This document shows, piece by piece, positions 26,101 through 59,506 of a DNA stretch of 64,000 bases. The notes under the pieces were generated by a model. The model was given only the letters and a program-made list of their open reading frames with translations. It made no database searches and had not been told where the DNA came from. Within the stretch, counting starts at the first letter, position 1, and every line of letters begins with the position of its first letter. Where the stretch lies: positions 1 to 64,000 of the IMG/VR virus record IMGVR_UViG_3300001782_000005. One strand, 5' to 3'. The position numbers were made by a program, and so were the translations under genes.

Positions 26101-27273
26101 GATGGTTCAGCAGTAATTGACTACAACTTCGATACAACAGCAACAATAACTTTGAGTACTACACTGCCTCCGGAAATTTGTCAGTGGACTGGTCAAGAAG
26201 AACAGTGGGTTGAAGAAGAAGGACAGTGGATAGATGATGAGAGTCAATGCGTCCCAATTGAGGTACTGTTAACCCAATGGATTAACAATAGTCCGCATTG
26301 GCAGACCCAGTGGGTCGATGAATCTCTCCAATGGGTAGATCAAGAATATACAACTCTGACATTACCTCCTATCCCGGATCCAACACCTCCGGATGAACCT
26401 TTCTATCTATATGGTTATATGGCAGGTGGTTGGCAAGATTTTGATGAAGAAGGTTTATTTGATTGTATGGGTAGTAAGGATATTGTTCAAATTTATATAC
26501 AAGATTCGACCGCGATAATTACCACGACTACAACAGTTACGTCAACAACCTCTACTACAAGTACAGTTACTACTACAACTACTACGACTACTACTACAAC
26601 CTCCACAACATCAACAACTACAACTACCTGCTGGGGTCCTATTGGAGACTCATTTGCTGGACCAGACTATAGTCCGCCTAATCCAGCACTTTGGACTGAC
26701 GTGACGTTTGGCGGAACTGGTAATGAAGTTAGAATTCTAAATAATAAACTCAATCTATACATGTCTGGAACTCCTAACCCGGAAGTTGACTCTGTCTTCA
26801 ATCTTGGAGTTGGAGACTTTGATGTTCAAGTCGATTATGAGATACTCCAAAGTACAATTTCAGAAGACTGGTATATAATTATGTCGGGTTGGGATCAAGC
26901 TGCTATTGGATTCTGTAATGGTACTTATGTTGGAGTAATGAGAGGTGTCTGGAGTGGAGTGCATGAATATCGCCTTTACTACTGTAGTGGCAGTTCGTTT
27001 GGATATTTAGGTGCTGTTGCTACTGCTGATATGTCAGGAAAGTTACGTTTAGCAAGAGTAGGTAGTATATGGTCGACTTATTATTGGAGTGGCGGATCTT
27101 GGGTTCTAATTGCTCAGTGGACACAAGTAACACACCCAGTAGGCAATGTGGTTTATCCATTGACGTTCCAACTTAGAAATTTAACTGGTTCTGCTCCGAT
27201 ACTTGAGATTGCGCTTGATAACTTCTGTTTAGTTAGTTATATAACCACGACAACTACAACTACACCGCCATAG
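23059..27273 (+). CDS. Giant modular Thr-rich protein containing a baseplate-wedge-like segment (1404 aa)
   Basis: Shared leader, ConA-like domain, propeller region (SDDFGLTW), acidic helical segment with VIDFFKPYRARL (FFKPYRARL at 25783-25809), QW repeats, C-terminal ConA-like domain. Confidence 0.65.
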   Translation: MKIYEKVVIDIESGKILDEVSYDYEGPIAQMQTTTTTMTCPPTTADWSTCFSEYPLGAQPSDWTERWYPASVEYRVVDGSAGRIGGQSMRERISVAPFEKSISWDTPGFLTDVEVLARVKCLSTTGDPAVIVRGSGADSGKYGFYAKLNDGLNLEVGYWNNSALWGIPLADKRFYHYVQTWYWIRFRVYDNTILKAKVWEDGDPEPSDWMIELSTGSGPSFSGWVGVGGVGATDNFYDVYEVWDLSSLTTTTSTTTTTTTSTTGSTTTSITYFTTTTTMPPFPTTTTAPPFEWLCCDRCLQRSMPGSDGSWSSLNFITYIPPIQRFFYWFYYSPGFRVLKYSDDFGLTWTSQATKVSSGRFCVDPYGLELYVIAGTTLCKILSGNPELFWQTTQTIPAAPAGTQHLILTRPSGDPLIGGFLIANAGGGNVTVYQLADENISIAWQLRLNWAHDPLETVTNSDIAWCQTGSGGATLIIKEGNRFMYAEWAGSFFQPVIHPAEVSDSDSTSIQNWQVVADDYGQTHLFWRDEVDGNLHYQRYSGSTWLVNKVTIGPISNKWEAQYINSELFGVSYGILFAREATVGGKGYYIDTEFSTDFIEGINCCDIDFSFIDPPQQLTLKHSHVVPPCGYMIVRENIFSTSHEFQIFDPVSQEQALTTTSTTTTTTTTTTTTTTTTTTTTTPPPDFEVEFDFFRFWSPATTTTITVTTPATTTIPPLPTTTTTIPPYIQFIVEFDDFEGTPLTTTTTTTTTLTTTTTTFTTTTTATTTTVTSTVTTTTPPPRNLEYNKDIIGTIEEADAEFEELVNTPPESRDDRKAKLEIFRENWSRLFNSPPYQVDPDAAETILAAINPDLKNDIDSWFDAGDDATLIEYLFTDLHQWILEHFGAYPNLGSIAAGIPFLIKQVIDFFKPYRARLAFFESAAIFDDALLDSIRLDDASSMIIYQTVVDTPVADSIPCCPYPETSPCDSTAALYYAREYYDCGSYYDSGIVDDLDDVRLTVRQDVHDFYSCLPDGSAVIDYNFDTTATITLSTTLPPEICQWTGQEEQWVEEEGQWIDDESQCVPIEVLLTQWINNSPHWQTQWVDESLQWVDQEYTTLTLPPIPDPTPPDEPFYLYGYMAGGWQDFDEEGLFDCMGSKDIVQIYIQDSTAIITTTTTVTSTTSTTSTVTTTTTTTTTTTSTTSTTTTTCWGPIGDSFAGPDYSPPNPALWTDVTFGGTGNEVRILNNKLNLYMSGTPNPEVDSVFNLGVGDFDVQVDYEILQSTISEDWYIIMSGWDQAAIGFCNGTYVGVMRGVWSGVHEYRLYYCSGSSFGYLGAVATADMSGKLRLARVGSIWSTYYWSGGSWVLIAQWTQVTHPVGNVVYPLTFQLRNLTGSAPILEIALDNFCLVSYITTTTTTTPP

Positions 27274-27289
27274 TAGAACAAATAAATAG

Positions 27290-27305
27290 AGTAGTCGCTC
27301 GTTAC
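27290..27305 (+). repeat. Left arm of a 16-bp inverted repeat bracketing the 303-aa gene
   Basis: AGTAGTCGCTCGTTAC; complementary to 28288-28303, with one G-U pair on the + strand. Confidence 0.85.
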
Positions 27306-27367
27306 TTAAACTCCAATCGTCTTTAAACATTGAGGGTTTAGACGATGCCCTGTAAAAGGAGGTAGTC

Positions 27368-28279
27368 ATGGTGTACAAAGATCGCTTCGTTGCCGTTGTC
27401 AAATGTAACGGTAAAGTCTTGAGAGAAAAAGACGATACTGTTACCCTACCATTTGGTTCAGAGTATTCCCTTCTATTGAAAAACCTTGAGTCAAGAAAAG
27501 CAGTCGTGAATGTTTCGATTGACGGTCAGGACGTAGTCGATGGATCTCTAATTCTTGATCCAAATTCGGAAGTAGAACTCGAAGGTTTTTTAAAGGGATA
27601 TCAAGTCAAGAATAAATTTAAGTTTATTCAGAAGACTGAAGAAATAACCAAACATCGTGGTGATAGAATTGATGACGGAGTTATCAGAATTGAGTACAGG
27701 TTTGAAAAGAAGATTGAAGAGGAGATAGTCTATAGGAGAAGATATAGACGGTGTTATCCACCCTATATTCCCTATTGGACGTGGACCTGTTCTAGGTGTG
27801 GTTGTTACCCTTGTTGTTGCCCTCCGTATTATTATTATGAATGTGGTTCATTTAGTAATAAGACGGATGATTCGTCTGTACAGTATACATTCACTAATTC
27901 AAATGGAGAAGTTGAAACGGGTACAATTGCACAGTCTAATGATGTTCAGGTGATGAATTGTGCTTTCTCTGATGGTCAATCAGGAACACCTAGATCGACT
28001 AGCCACTCAACGATCTTACATGAAAATTCTAAACCTGCTGAAGATGAGGGTATTACTGTTCCTGGGTCACATTCAGGTCAAAGGTTTAGTCAGGGACATT
28101 TCAGAGAACTAGAAAACAATTCTCACGTTATCACAATAAAACTAAGAGGAGTCAAATCTAATATGACTCCTGTTAAGAAACCTGTGACAACCAAAAGTAA
28201 GGTTAGTTGTCCAACTTGTGGAACCAAATCAAAGTCTAGTGCTGATTTCTGCTCTAAGTGTGGAACAGCTCTATTCTAA
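27368..28279 (+). CDS. Conserved large-phage hypothetical protein with Cys/Tyr/Pro-rich middle and C-terminal double zinc ribbon
   Basis: NGKVLRE...LPFGSEYSLLLKNL...VSIDG motif recognised from large-phage hypothetical proteins; CPTCG...FCSKCG C-terminus; SD AAGGAGGT. Confidence 0.75.
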   Translation: MVYKDRFVAVVKCNGKVLREKDDTVTLPFGSEYSLLLKNLESRKAVVNVSIDGQDVVDGSLILDPNSEVELEGFLKGYQVKNKFKFIQKTEEITKHRGDRIDDGVIRIEYRFEKKIEEEIVYRRRYRRCYPPYIPYWTWTCSRCGCYPCCCPPYYYYECGSFSNKTDDSSVQYTFTNSNGEVETGTIAQSNDVQVMNCAFSDGQSGTPRSTSHSTILHENSKPAEDEGITVPGSHSGQRFSQGHFRELENNSHVITIKLRGVKSNMTPVKKPVTTKSKVSCPTCGTKSKSSADFCSKCGTALF

Positions 28280-28287
28280 TTAAACTG

Positions 28288-28303
28288 GTAATGAGCGACT
28301 ACT
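28288..28303 (+). repeat. Right arm of the 16-bp inverted repeat
   Basis: GTAATGAGCGACTACT. Confidence 0.85.
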
Positions 28304-28360
28304 TAATTTGCATTTATATTAGAACAAATTAAAAACAATCTCAGTAAAGAGGATTTGGAC

Positions 28361-29023
28361 ATGAGCAAAATAGAGACAATTCACGTCGAAGTAAAAGACG
28401 AATACGGAGAACACTGTTTCGGTGATGGAGTACAAGAGAAAGATACAATTCTCCGAAAACCCAAAGGTAGAGTCGATATTTTTGAAGAAAAGGATGGAGA
28501 AAGAAAGAAAATCTATTCAAGTGATAATCTTGTAGTTTATCTTGGGCGTGAATATGTAGCTGTGAGAGTTTTCAATGTTGATAACCCAAGCATAGTACCA
28601 GTTAAAGAGGATTTTATTGGATGGTTAGGTCTGGGCGATGGAGGAGTTACTCCAGGCGATCCGTTAGATCCGATTTTGCCGACTAATTATGATACCGATA
28701 TGGCTAGTGAAGTTCCAATAAGTGCAACTGATACTAGCTATGGAGATTTTCGTGGTGGTTTTTATTACAAGCACCCAATTGATACAGTTGTTTTTTACCA
28801 GGATGACGCAAATGACGATCAGTGGTTAATAGGACAAGTTACAACGACAATTGGAACCGCAGACGCCAATGGAGAATTATTGAGTGAGGCAGGTCTCTAT
28901 GTAGCCCCAAGCAAATCTGGAGGCGAATCGGGTCCATTTAGCTTATTTGCGAGAGTTACATTTCCAACAATTGTAAAAGATTCTACTCGTCAGCTAGTTA
29001 TTGTGTGGTATATCTATTTCTAG
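28361..29023 (+). CDS. Tail-collar/fibre or baseplate-associated structural protein
   Basis: NLVVYLGR, IGWLGLGDGG, SEAGLY, LFARVTFPTIVK...IVWYIYF pattern; directly upstream of the sheath. ATG 28361 has the better SD spacing than TTG 28355. Confidence 0.6.
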   Translation: MSKIETIHVEVKDEYGEHCFGDGVQEKDTILRKPKGRVDIFEEKDGERKKIYSSDNLVVYLGREYVAVRVFNVDNPSIVPVKEDFIGWLGLGDGGVTPGDPLDPILPTNYDTDMASEVPISATDTSYGDFRGGFYYKHPIDTVVFYQDDANDDQWLIGQVTTTIGTADANGELLSEAGLYVAPSKSGGESGPFSLFARVTFPTIVKDSTRQLVIVWYIYF

Positions 29024-31106: not shown

Positions 31107-31128
31107 AACCAAAAAAAATAGTAACAAA

Positions 31129-31165
31129 AATAACCCTCCGGGTAAATCTCGGGGGGTTATTTTTT
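31129..31165. terminator. Bidirectional terminator between convergent operons
   Basis: AATAACCCTCCG / CGGGGGGTTATT stem with flanking A and T tracts. Confidence 0.85.
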
Positions 31166-31176
31166 CGACTTTCATC

Positions 31177-31623
31177 TTAAAGGAGAAGATTCTCTTTCCT
31201 GAGTAAGATATAAGTATTTACAGGTTTCTCCCTTATCCATTTATCAATCGTAGTTTCAAAGGCATCACTACTTTTAGTTTGGACATTCCAAGGTAAAACA
31301 TAGTTTGCACCAAATCCTCCTGCTCCTGTTTTTATAGCATCGAGGACCTCATCGAGTCTACACTCCTGCGTGGCCACTATTTCCATTGAACCTAATACGA
31401 TATAATCAGCTGGGCGAGGAAGTTCTTTCTGACTTCCGATAACTGTAACCTTTGCATCCTCTACAGGTTCATAGTCTTGGGTTGTGGCCTTGAAACGCTT
31501 GACTATAATCCTGCACTGTATCTTTTCCTCAGGGGGAAGATTCGTTTGGTAGTTCTGTCCAGCATTTGTGGTTTTGCAGGATAGAATTACCAAACCTATT
31601 ATTATGATTAAAAGTTTCTTCAT
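31177..31623 (-). CDS. Predicted lipoprotein
   Basis: MKKLLIIIIGLVILSC: basic N-terminus, hydrophobic core, lipobox Cys. Confidence 0.65.
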   Translation of the reverse strand: MKKLLIIIIGLVILSCKTTNAGQNYQTNLPPEEKIQCRIIVKRFKATTQDYEPVEDAKVTVIGSQKELPRPADYIVLGSMEIVATQECRLDEVLDAIKTGAGGFGANYVLPWNVQTKSSDAFETTIDKWIREKPVNTYILLRKENLLL

Positions 31624-31626
31624 TCT

Positions 31627-32181
31627 CTACTCCTCTCTCGTTTTCTGATCCTCCTCCAATTTATACCACGGAACTCGTAGTACATTGTGTAGAGCAATTG
31701 TGCTGTAAATTGCATATTCTAAGTCACCATTACCGCCTGCATCATCTATCGTCTTAAAATCATTATATTTAGAGTTATGCATGACGGGATAAAACCAAGT
31801 ACCAATTGCTGCTGTACCAACATATCCCTTGGTGAAATAGGAATATCTTGTTGCCTCAAAACTGGTTAGAGCAAGGCCAACACTGTGTTGAAGGACAAAC
31901 CCTCCACGTGCAAACCATCTCAAATCACTATCGCTATCGTGGTCATCTACGTGTTCAGCTCTATAACCGTTTTCGAAGTGCCAATCAACACCCCAAATCT
32001 CTCCTGCTAACCAGTGACCAGCAGTGTGTACTCCTATACTTGTTACAATTCCAGCACCGACGTATGCCCAATCTTTCGGTTTTGCCTCTGTGACTATATC
32101 CATATCAATTCCGAAGAAATAGAACTTCGTTCCTCCACAACCACAGAGTAATAACAGAAGAACAAGCATAATTTTCTTCAT
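31627..32181 (-). CDS. Predicted lipoprotein / membrane protein
   Basis: MKKIMLVLLLLLCGC signal followed by several hydrophobic helices. Confidence 0.6.
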   Translation of the reverse strand: MKKIMLVLLLLLCGCGGTKFYFFGIDMDIVTEAKPKDWAYVGAGIVTSIGVHTAGHWLAGEIWGVDWHFENGYRAEHVDDHDSDSDLRWFARGGFVLQHSVGLALTSFEATRYSYFTKGYVGTAAIGTWFYPVMHNSKYNDFKTIDDAGGNGDLEYAIYSTIALHNVLRVPWYKLEEDQKTREE

Positions 32182-32207
32182 CCAATATTCACTCCTTTGA
32201 AGATAAA

Positions 32208-32244
32208 AATAACCCTCCGGAGAATCTTAACGGGGGTTATTTTT
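32208..32244. terminator. Terminator; sequence paralog of 31129-31165
   Basis: AATAACCCTCCG...CGGGGGTTATTTT. Confidence 0.75.
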
Positions 32245-32255
32245 GGATGAGGTTT

Positions 32256-33310: not shown

Positions 33311-33326
33311 TAATTAATATATATAG
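33311..33326. promoter_or_regulatory. TAATTAATATATATAG motif (copy 1 of 3) at a divergent junction
   Basis: Also at about 43810-43823 and, reverse-complemented, at 59491-59506. Confidence 0.55.
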
Positions 33327-36991: not shown

Positions 36992-36998
36992 CTCCTTA

Positions 36999-37084
36999 GA
37001 AAAAAAAGTGCCCGGGCAGGCGATCAGTTAGGACGAACCTCCGTAGAGGCCTGGGGCCTGACCAATCACACCACACCGGGCACA
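36999..37084 (-). terminator. Extended multi-helix hairpin ending in a U tract
   Basis: GTGCCCGG/CCGGGCAC outer stem, inner stem, C(UACG)G tetraloop, TTTTTTT on the - strand after the OmpA gene. Confidence 0.6.
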
Positions 37085-37109
37085 CCATAACTACCAGATA
37101 GGTAGTCTT

Positions 37110-37823
37110 CTACTTGTATTGAATGATCTCAACACGACGGTTTTTCTGCCTGTTGAATGGACTGTCTTTCCCGCCCACTAGGTTGGGAAATAGTGGGAAG
37201 AGTTCACCCTTGGCCTTGATTGAGTGAATCTGACTGGGGTTTACACCCTGCTTGATAAGATGGTTCTCAGAAGACCTAGCACGCCTTTCAGATAGTCCTT
37301 GGTTGTACTCTTCCGAACCAAAGGAGTCAGTATGACCAATAATAACAACTTTGACGTCCGGGTTAGCTTTTAGGTCCTCAGCTACCCTATCAAGAACCTC
37401 GGCCGCATCTGGTCTGATGTTTGATTTGTCGAAGTCGAATAGTGCGTTATCCCATTTGAGGACAACAGGTTTGACTTCTTCAACAACAGGAGCCGCCTGA
37501 CAATCACAGGCCTCTTGTGCTTTTGCAAGTGCCTGCTTAATCAGATCCCAGGCTTCTGCACTATCACATCTTACCCATGCATCATAAGCGGCGGCCTTCA
37601 ACCTCTGTGCCTCGTTGTAGATATCGGGGCAATTCTTCATTCCGTTCTTCTCACATTCTTTTAGTTTTGCCTCGACCTCCATTAAGGCATCAGAAAAACC
37701 TTGGTTCTCCATTTCGGTCGAATAGACCTGAAGTGGTTGTTCCGGGGCCTTTGCCTTTTTAGCACATGCTACTGGAAGTACCAGAAAGAGTGCTAGTGAG
37801 ATTAACAATAATTTCCTCGCCAT
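37110..37823 (-). CDS. OmpA-family peptidoglycan-binding (lipo)protein
   Basis: LFDFDKSNI, IIGHTDSFGSEEYNQGLSERRA, NRRVEI; signal peptide ending LPVAC. Confidence 0.92.
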   Translation of the reverse strand: MARKLLLISLALFLVLPVACAKKAKAPEQPLQVYSTEMENQGFSDALMEVEAKLKECEKNGMKNCPDIYNEAQRLKAAAYDAWVRCDSAEAWDLIKQALAKAQEACDCQAAPVVEEVKPVVLKWDNALFDFDKSNIRPDAAEVLDRVAEDLKANPDVKVVIIGHTDSFGSEEYNQGLSERRARSSENHLIKQGVNPSQIHSIKAKGELFPLFPNLVGGKDSPFNRQKNRRVEIIQYK

Positions 37824-38970: not shown

Positions 38971-39009
38971 TTCCCACTCTCCTCTGATATTTGGGAAGAA
39001 ATAGGGGGT

Positions 39010-39195
39010 TACAATCCTTTTTCGTCAGGGCATGGACCCCCGGCCATATCTATCCCTTAGCCAAATAAAAGACCATTCCGAAAGGGTTTTCCGGCACGTC
39101 AGAATCTAGTCTTATACCACAGGATTGCAGGTGGCCAGAGGAGTTTCGTGCCAACCACCATATCTGCTAGTGAGGTGGCGACTGGGGGGATAAAC
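39010..39195 (-). ncRNA. Candidate structured RNA with pseudoknot potential
   Basis: GC-richer intergenic stretch with interleaved helices GGUGGUU/GGCCACC and GGCACG/CGUGCC; no known family recognised. Confidence 0.35.
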
Positions 39196-39198
39196 TAT

Positions 39199-43772: not shown

Positions 43773-43898
43773 AAAACTAATTAAAAAGACACAACCACAT
43801 TACTTTAAAATTAATATATATAGTTATTCATCTTATTAATGAATCCTCCCATCCAATTTATTCTGGTATAAAGAACAAATTATAAATGCCAACTATCC

Positions 43899-59490: not shown

Positions 59491-59506
59491 CTATATATAT
59501 TAATTA
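59491..59506. promoter_or_regulatory. CTATATATATTAATTA motif (copy 3); sigma70-like TTGGAA-17-TATATT on the + strand
   Basis: TTGGAA 59473-59478, TATATT 59496-59501. Confidence 0.5.

Follow-up and report, generated by a model that had tools for sequence, protein, structure and literature searches.

[quoted passage not shown]

The locus and its long-range helix

The stretch of DNA analyzed here (the window) comprises the first 64,000 nucleotides of the 277-kb virus record IMGVR_UViG_3300001782_000005, which has direct terminal repeats. It encodes a tail sheath, a baseplate and a terminase, and the genome carries two sets of multisubunit RNA polymerase (RNAP) beta and beta' genes. It is therefore a jumbo myovirus that brings its own transcription machinery. 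A tubulin (PhuZ-like) gene was not found, so that a phage nucleus is neither shown nor excluded. DNA of this phage was found in marine sediment and seawater metagenomes, whereas no RNA sequencing run was found to contain the region. A nucleotide search of the region against 50,697 phage records gave no match. The features of the locus are the following.

27276..27283 (+), GAACAAAT promoter-like motif (AACA core at 27277-27280), with a predicted start at A27288
27289..27306 (+), 5' arm of the long-range helix (core 27290-27305, possible extension to 27284)
27316..27322 (+), 5' strand of pseudoknot stem 1, pairing with 27340-27346
27333..27337 (+), 5' strand of pseudoknot stem 2, inside the loop of stem 1 and pairing with 27347-27351
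27340..27351 (+), 3' strands of the pseudoknot, stem 1 at 27340-27346 directly followed by stem 2 at 27347-27351
27358..27362 (+), Shine-Dalgarno (SD) sequence GGAGG, 6 nt after the pseudoknot and 5 nt before the ATG
27368..28279 (+), gene encoding a hypothetical protein of 303 aa with a predicted Ig-like beta-sandwich, a variable Cys/Pro/Tyr-rich insert and a C-terminal zinc ribbon
28280..28286 (+), spacer between the stop codon and the 3' arm
28287..28304 (+), 3' arm of the long-range helix (core 28288-28303, possible extension to 28309)
28322..28329 (+), GAACAAAT promoter-like motif of the next gene (222 aa), marking the outer limit of the unit

The initial annotation had reported that the two flanks of the gene are complementary over 16 bp, and this observation is confirmed. 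AGTAGTCGCTCGTTAC at 27290-27305 pairs with GTAATGAGCGACTACT at 28288-28303 through 15 Watson-Crick pairs and one G-U pair (27301:28292). Two more G-U pairs extend the helix to 18 pairs (27289-27306 with 28287-28304) and, after one A:A mismatch, four more pairs bring it to 23 positions (27284-27306 with 28287-28309).

Taken alone, the helix is not significant. Indeed, in 100 Markov shuffles of the window, 26 had somewhere a helix of at least 16 bp with at most one G-U at a distance of 200-3000 nt, although this search rule missed the real helix, which runs on into extra G-U pairs, and shows only that length alone is not significant. However, among 362 crudely called genes of the 277-kb genome, this gene has the best bracketing helix, with a score of 14.5, where the next best is 11.5 and the median 6.75.

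The GAACAAAT motif recurs just upstream of many genes of this phage. In Bacillus phage AR9, which also has two multisubunit polymerases, late promoters read AACA-N6-T-A/G with the last base as the start, which puts +1 at the 8th nt after AACA (PMC5312081). Applied here, this rule predicts a start at A27288, and the helix would begin at +2. This start is inferred by an imperfect analogy, as the T-A/G element is not well conserved in this phage. No terminator was found in the window upstream of the gene or between the 3' arm and the next promoter, so read-through RNAs are likely.

The 303-aa protein belongs to a large family with more than 1,700 hits, all hypothetical. AlphaFold (mean pLDDT 78) predicts one Ig-like beta-sandwich built from residues 1-115 and 228-260, a disordered, variable Cys/Pro/Tyr/Trp-rich insert and a C-terminal zinc ribbon. 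Pfam recognized only the zinc ribbon and PHROGs nothing meaningful, while a profile search of the PDB gave only a weak likeness to ribosomal zinc ribbons. Foldseek and VIA searches of the PDB returned generic Ig-like sandwiches, and the ESM Atlas clusters are all hypothetical. Matches in BFVD at E about 1e-10 are uncharacterized proteins of large eukaryotic DNA viruses and one marine phage protein. Synteny places the gene at the head of a conserved block formed by the 222-aa protein and the tail sheath.

Conservation and covariation of the helix in related loci

To determine whether the pairing is maintained, we gathered about 80 loci from viral contigs, closer relatives from assemblies, and three cultured jumbo phages, XacN1, Xoo-sp13 and RAS14. 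Most loci share one layout: a promoter-like AACA motif, often preceded by TTAATATATATAG, a 5' arm, a conserved leader element, the SD and the ORF, a short A-rich spacer, a 3' arm complementary to the 5' arm and, often, an ordinary terminator hairpin. The arm sequences are unrelated between lineages, with at least 12 sequence families, but each pairs with its own partner. In these families, the 5' arm ends 57-70 nt before the ATG and the 3' arm starts 7-15 nt after the stop, mostly 7-11 nt.

RNAduplex energies, which allowed large internal loops, were too noisy to be informative (cognate −24.1 against non-cognate −16.9 kcal/mol, with wide overlap). We therefore used an ungapped-helix score that treats all mismatches alike. 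Cognate 5' and 3' flanks reached 10 or more in 30 of 67 loci, against 3.2% of non-cognate pairs, and 12 or more in 21 of 67, against 0.9%. Contiguous Watson-Crick or G-U helices of 11 bp or more were found in 30 of 67 cognate pairs, against 5.5% of non-cognate pairs. Overall, about half to two-thirds of the 67 loci have a 5'UTR/3'UTR helix at the same positions, and about a third of homologues lack it, so it is not essential to the gene.

Compensatory changes were observed in the window's own clade (66-81% protein identity). The pair 27301:28292 is G-U, G-C or A-U; 27302:28291 is U-A, U-G or C-G; and 27296:28297 is C-G, or U-A in one locus, L032, where the outer extension also changes on both sides and stays paired. 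These are the classical routes through wobble intermediates, which work only on the sense strand. Over the family, independent non-Watson-Crick positions inside helices are G-U 13 times and A-C 4 times (p about 0.05, conservative count), indicating that the pairing acts in the sense-strand RNA. Within the clade, the 5' flank is 96-99% identical and the 3' flank 89-96%, against 73-84% for the CDS and about 60% for the DNA further upstream. When the complete 0.9-1.0-kb mRNAs were folded, the helix was in the minimum-energy structure in 11 of 11 lineages tested, with a mean pair probability of 0.91-1.00; for the 5' arm of the window, the pairing probability was at least 0.99. The initial annotation had set complementary flanks and compensatory changes in homologues as a test of its proposal, and both were found.

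The homologues without the long-range helix fall into two groups. Some have a local hairpin of 4-7 bp at the same place, namely the cultured phages XacN1 and Xoo-sp13 and our loci L073, L094, L024, L028, L030, L036 and L059. In others, the pseudoknot follows the promoter directly, with leaders of 12-20 nt (loci L047, L057, L061, L068, L069 and L084). On a quick tree, the helix occurs throughout the metagenomic family, including deep branches, is absent from the cultured outgroup and has been lost several times.

A conserved pseudoknot beside the Shine-Dalgarno sequence

The initial annotation had also noted an extra hairpin before the SD (27316-27322 with 27340-27346). This was an under-reading, since this hairpin is stem 1 of a conserved pseudoknot, whose stem 2 starts inside the loop of stem 1 and ends directly after it. 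On an alignment of 65 sequences, 93% of cells were paired in the proposed structure, against 29-41% in slid controls, and 167 double-change cells were counted, against 39 in shuffles. For stem 1, 97.6% of cells were paired and 4 of 7 pairs showed double changes; for stem 2, all pairs showed changes on both sides. The loop lengths, with a long A-rich loop 1, a 2-nt loop 2 and no loop 3, would fit a coaxial stack in which the 2-nt loop crosses the deep groove of the 7-bp stem, as reasoned from pseudoknot geometry alone. The pseudoknot also has invariant unpaired bases (CUUUAAA and UUAG), which suggests tertiary or protein contacts.

A covariance model of this element hit a single site in the 277-kb genome and the start of the homologous gene in every locus. 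A second copy drives unrelated inserted endonuclease ORFs. The element was also found in XacN1, Xoo-sp13 and RAS14 (cultured Xanthomonas and Stenotrophomonas phages), where both stems have different sequences. Searches of Rfam 15 returned only chance-level hits at E up to 10 in 27200-28400 and, at gathering score, nothing in the window and only tRNAs in 20 loci.

Possible roles of the helix and comparison with known systems

What the analysis shows is that the helix is real, gene-specific, thermodynamically dominant and maintained by compensatory evolution across a large family of jumbo-phage genes, and that it does not touch the ribosome-binding site (RBS). It ties the first nucleotides of the 5' UTR, taking the predicted start, to the 3' UTR about 8 nt past the stop codon and loops out the whole 303-codon reading frame. 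We are highly confident that it is a functional sense-strand RNA helix. Its role, the presence of both arms on one transcript, which promoter and terminator positions make likely, and any effect on ribonuclease cleavage or mRNA half-life are inferred from sequence alone. The interpretation of the initial annotation is thus partly supported: its RNA loop is right in kind, its excisable cassette is not supported, and covalent circularization, which it had also listed, has no support.

The most likely role is an mRNA end clamp. By burying the 5' end of the message only when the 3' UTR is present, the helix would shield the mRNA from 5'-end-dependent decay, in a host whose RNase set is unknown, and link this protection to transcript integrity, much like the 14-bp 5'/3'-UTR pairing of B. 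subtilis hbs and like 5'-terminal stem-loop stabilizers. We hold this explanation as a whole to be only somewhat more likely than not, and that stabilization by end sequestration is the main role remains tentative. In its favor, the 5' arm begins 4-12 nt after the AACA core, and the three layouts of the family have in common a structured 5' end; in this view, the local hairpin or the pseudoknot at the 5' end does the same job in relatives, and the long-range helix adds dependence on the 3' UTR. The giant phage phiKZ encodes a protein, Dip, that inhibits the host degradosome (PMC4980113). However, in several lineages complementarity extends 4 nt upstream of the predicted start (AAAT/ATTT), covarying in L032, so the real 5' end may lie further upstream and leave a single-stranded tail.

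Two other RNA-level readings are less likely but remain open. An RNase III-type stem, forming in read-through polycistronic RNA and cut to release a monocistronic mRNA whose ends stay paired, was among the proposals of the initial annotation and would agree with the 18-23 positions reached in the window clade, the 24 bp of L032, the bases paired upstream of the predicted start and the lack of terminators around the gene in the window. These points keep it alive for the long-helix lineages, but it is unlikely as a family-wide function, because helix lengths range from 8 to 28 bp with a median near 14, many being too short for a classical RNase III substrate of about two helical turns. Moreover, many loci have their own promoter directly before the 5' arm and their own terminator hairpin after the 3' arm, so that no processing is needed there, and a short local hairpin substitutes for the helix in relatives. 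A translation-level closed loop or regulatory scaffold is also rather unlikely, though possible: the helix brings the stop codon next to the pseudoknot, SD and start codon, so terminating ribosomes could re-initiate on the same message, or a protein, possibly the zinc-ribbon product itself, could bind the helix-pseudoknot platform to set the yield. The geometry is conserved (stop, 7-11 nt, helix, 5-10 nt, pseudoknot, 5-6 nt, SD), and the spacer after the stop is never shorter than 6 nt in helices at the canonical place, which would keep the helix outside a terminating ribosome. Conversely, the pseudoknot occurs without the helix in a third of loci, its second copy before unrelated endonuclease ORFs argues against an operator specific to this protein, and there is no evidence that the protein, with its generic Ig-like fold, binds RNA. 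A more speculative and unlikely extension is a prokaryotic-virus counterpart of the eukaryotic closed-loop mRNA, in which only complete transcripts would be protected and efficiently re-translated, as a built-in integrity check and ribosome-recycling device. This may suit jumbo phages whose own RNA polymerases make ribosome-free full-length transcripts before translation begins.

A DNA-level inverted repeat marking an excisable or invertible cassette, or a remnant of its insertion, is very unlikely. The arms do bracket exactly one gene between promoter-like direct repeats, and upstream genes differ between relatives while conservation starts at the promoter motif. However, the arm sequences differ between lineages yet stay complementary, which a recombinase site would not do, and mismatches are strand-asymmetric. 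Contigs of four DNA runs were collinear over both arms without joints or inverted forms, which is weak evidence as these are contigs, the gene keeps one orientation relative to its downstream neighbors (the 222-aa gene and the sheath gene) in 49 of 50 loci, no recombinase lies beside it, and no repeat-mediated rearrangement was seen. Chance complementarity in AT-rich intergenic DNA, which the shuffles alone would allow, is refuted by the comparative data. A terminator role was rejected, as the flanks after the 3' arm are not consistently U-rich and many loci have a separate terminator hairpin further on. Anti-SD or alternative pairing was also rejected, since cognate and non-cognate scores did not differ (means of 7.16 and 7.03 for 3' UTR against RBS, 7.03 and 6.96 for 3' UTR against pseudoknot, and 7.00 and 6.74 for 5' arm against RBS).

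Classical H-type pseudoknots in leaders, such as the T4 gene 32 operator, likewise have two crossing stems just upstream of a translation start, and here both stems are supported by covariation, but the loop lengths are permuted. The RNase III processing stems that flank 16S and 23S rRNA and those of the T7 early mRNAs also bracket a long functional RNA, whereas here the median helix is about 14 bp, many loci have their own promoter and terminator, and there is no evidence of cleavage. In the S. aureus icaR and E. coli R1 hok mRNAs (PMC7821165, PMC9841398), long-distance 5'/3' pairing (anti-SD 3' UTR pairing and tac/fbi end pairing, respectively) also closes the molecule, but these pairings repress translation by occluding the SD, directly or through alternative pairings, and are resolved by RNase III or by 3' trimming; the icaR pairing creates an RNase III site (PMC7821165). 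Here, the 3' UTR has no cognate complementarity to the RBS and no alternative partner was found. As in 5'-terminal stem-loop stabilizers of the E. coli ompA leader type, a stem lies at or within a few nucleotides of the predicted 5' end, but its 3' strand is about 1 kb downstream, so that protection would depend on the presence of the 3' UTR.

Functional 5'/3'-UTR pairing in prokaryotic mRNAs is known from a handful of single-species cases (hbs, icaR, hok) and, for several of these, hbs among them, the 3' UTR is not conserved in close relatives. Here, the same principle is held by compensatory evolution across a large family, with natural swap variants (a local hairpin, or no stem at all) and an undescribed pseudoknot beside the RBS, which gives a ready comparative and mutational system for asking how message ends are protected, and how integrity is coupled to expression, in phage infection, and adds two candidate RNA motifs for the databases. 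[quoted passage not shown] The complementary, compensated UTR segments of the phage gene fit this type, but hbs is a short cellular mRNA, whereas the phage pairing spans about 1 kb, sits at the extreme 5' end as predicted, and is kept by covariation across a wide viral family.

Leader pseudoknot copies and gene order upstream of the 303-aa homologues

In three relatives, designated here by their loci, an extra ORF was found between the promoter and the homologue of the 303-aa gene. The regions concerned are:

L036, 2168-2884
L028, 2123-2935
L030, 2143-2222

These ORFs are 215 and 250 aa, have a DUF559/Vsr-like endonuclease fold and NUMOD-like repeats, and are probably free-standing homing endonucleases. 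Each has its own second copy of the leader pseudoknot, with different stem 2 sequences that still pair. The pseudoknot thus behaves as a portable expression element.

The region upstream of the 303-aa gene was also compared with that of the relatives (window 26538-26627 and 27243-27263; upstream flanks of the loci L003-L020). The 1404-aa upstream gene ends in Thr-rich ACN-type repeats. Among close relatives, the upstream gene differs completely, while sequence identity starts exactly at the GAACAAAT motif. The promoter therefore marks a recombination or module boundary. In several relatives (loci L014, L024, L028, and L062), tRNA gene arrays lie 1-2.5 kb upstream of the homologous gene, and in phage RAS14 a valyl-tRNA synthetase gene lies just upstream.

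Terminator-like and GC-rich structures in the window

Two near-identical terminator-like hairpins (AAAAATAACCCTCCGG...GGGGGTTATTTTT) were found to flank a two-gene minus-strand block set among plus-strand tail genes:

window 31107-31176, terminator-like hairpin
window 31177-32181 (-), two-gene block
window 32182-32246, terminator-like hairpin

This looks like an inserted module bounded by repeated bidirectional terminators. Neither of the two proteins has a Pfam hit.

A GC-rich stretch in this AT-rich genome (window 36992-37109, minus strand) folds on the minus strand into a long hairpin of about 75 nt followed by U8 (-54.5 kcal/mol, z -4.9). It is either an unusually strong terminator or a small structured RNA downstream of gene 37110-37823, and it has no Rfam match. 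In comparison, a second GC-rich spacer at 38971-39198 is not unusually stable (z -1.2).

Predicted fold of the 303-aa protein

The predicted fold of the 303-aa protein (window 27368-28279) matches, at a Foldseek E-value of about 1e-10, uncharacterised proteins of marseilleviruses, mimivirids, pithovirus, iridoviruses, nudiviruses, and baculoviruses in BFVD. In the Atlas, it matches phage clusters where a SHOCT domain replaces the zinc ribbon. This may indicate a very widespread viral beta-sandwich family of unknown role.

RNA polymerase genes and a possible second promoter class

No tubulin homologue was found. The phage genome (G000, contig C1) carries two copies each of RNA polymerase beta-like and beta'-like genes with strong Pfam scores:

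81320-82543 and 114109-115425, beta-like
85772-86200 and 120136-120636, beta'-like

The sequence TTAATATATATAG occurs three times in the window, where 0.24 occurrences would be expected:

33314-33326 (+)
43811-43823 (+)
59491-59503 (-)

Each occurrence lies in a divergent intergenic region, 25-60 nt upstream of a GAACA motif, and in many related loci the two motifs are adjacent. The sequence resembles the AT-rich early promoter class of AR9-type phages, which would imply two promoter classes in this phage.
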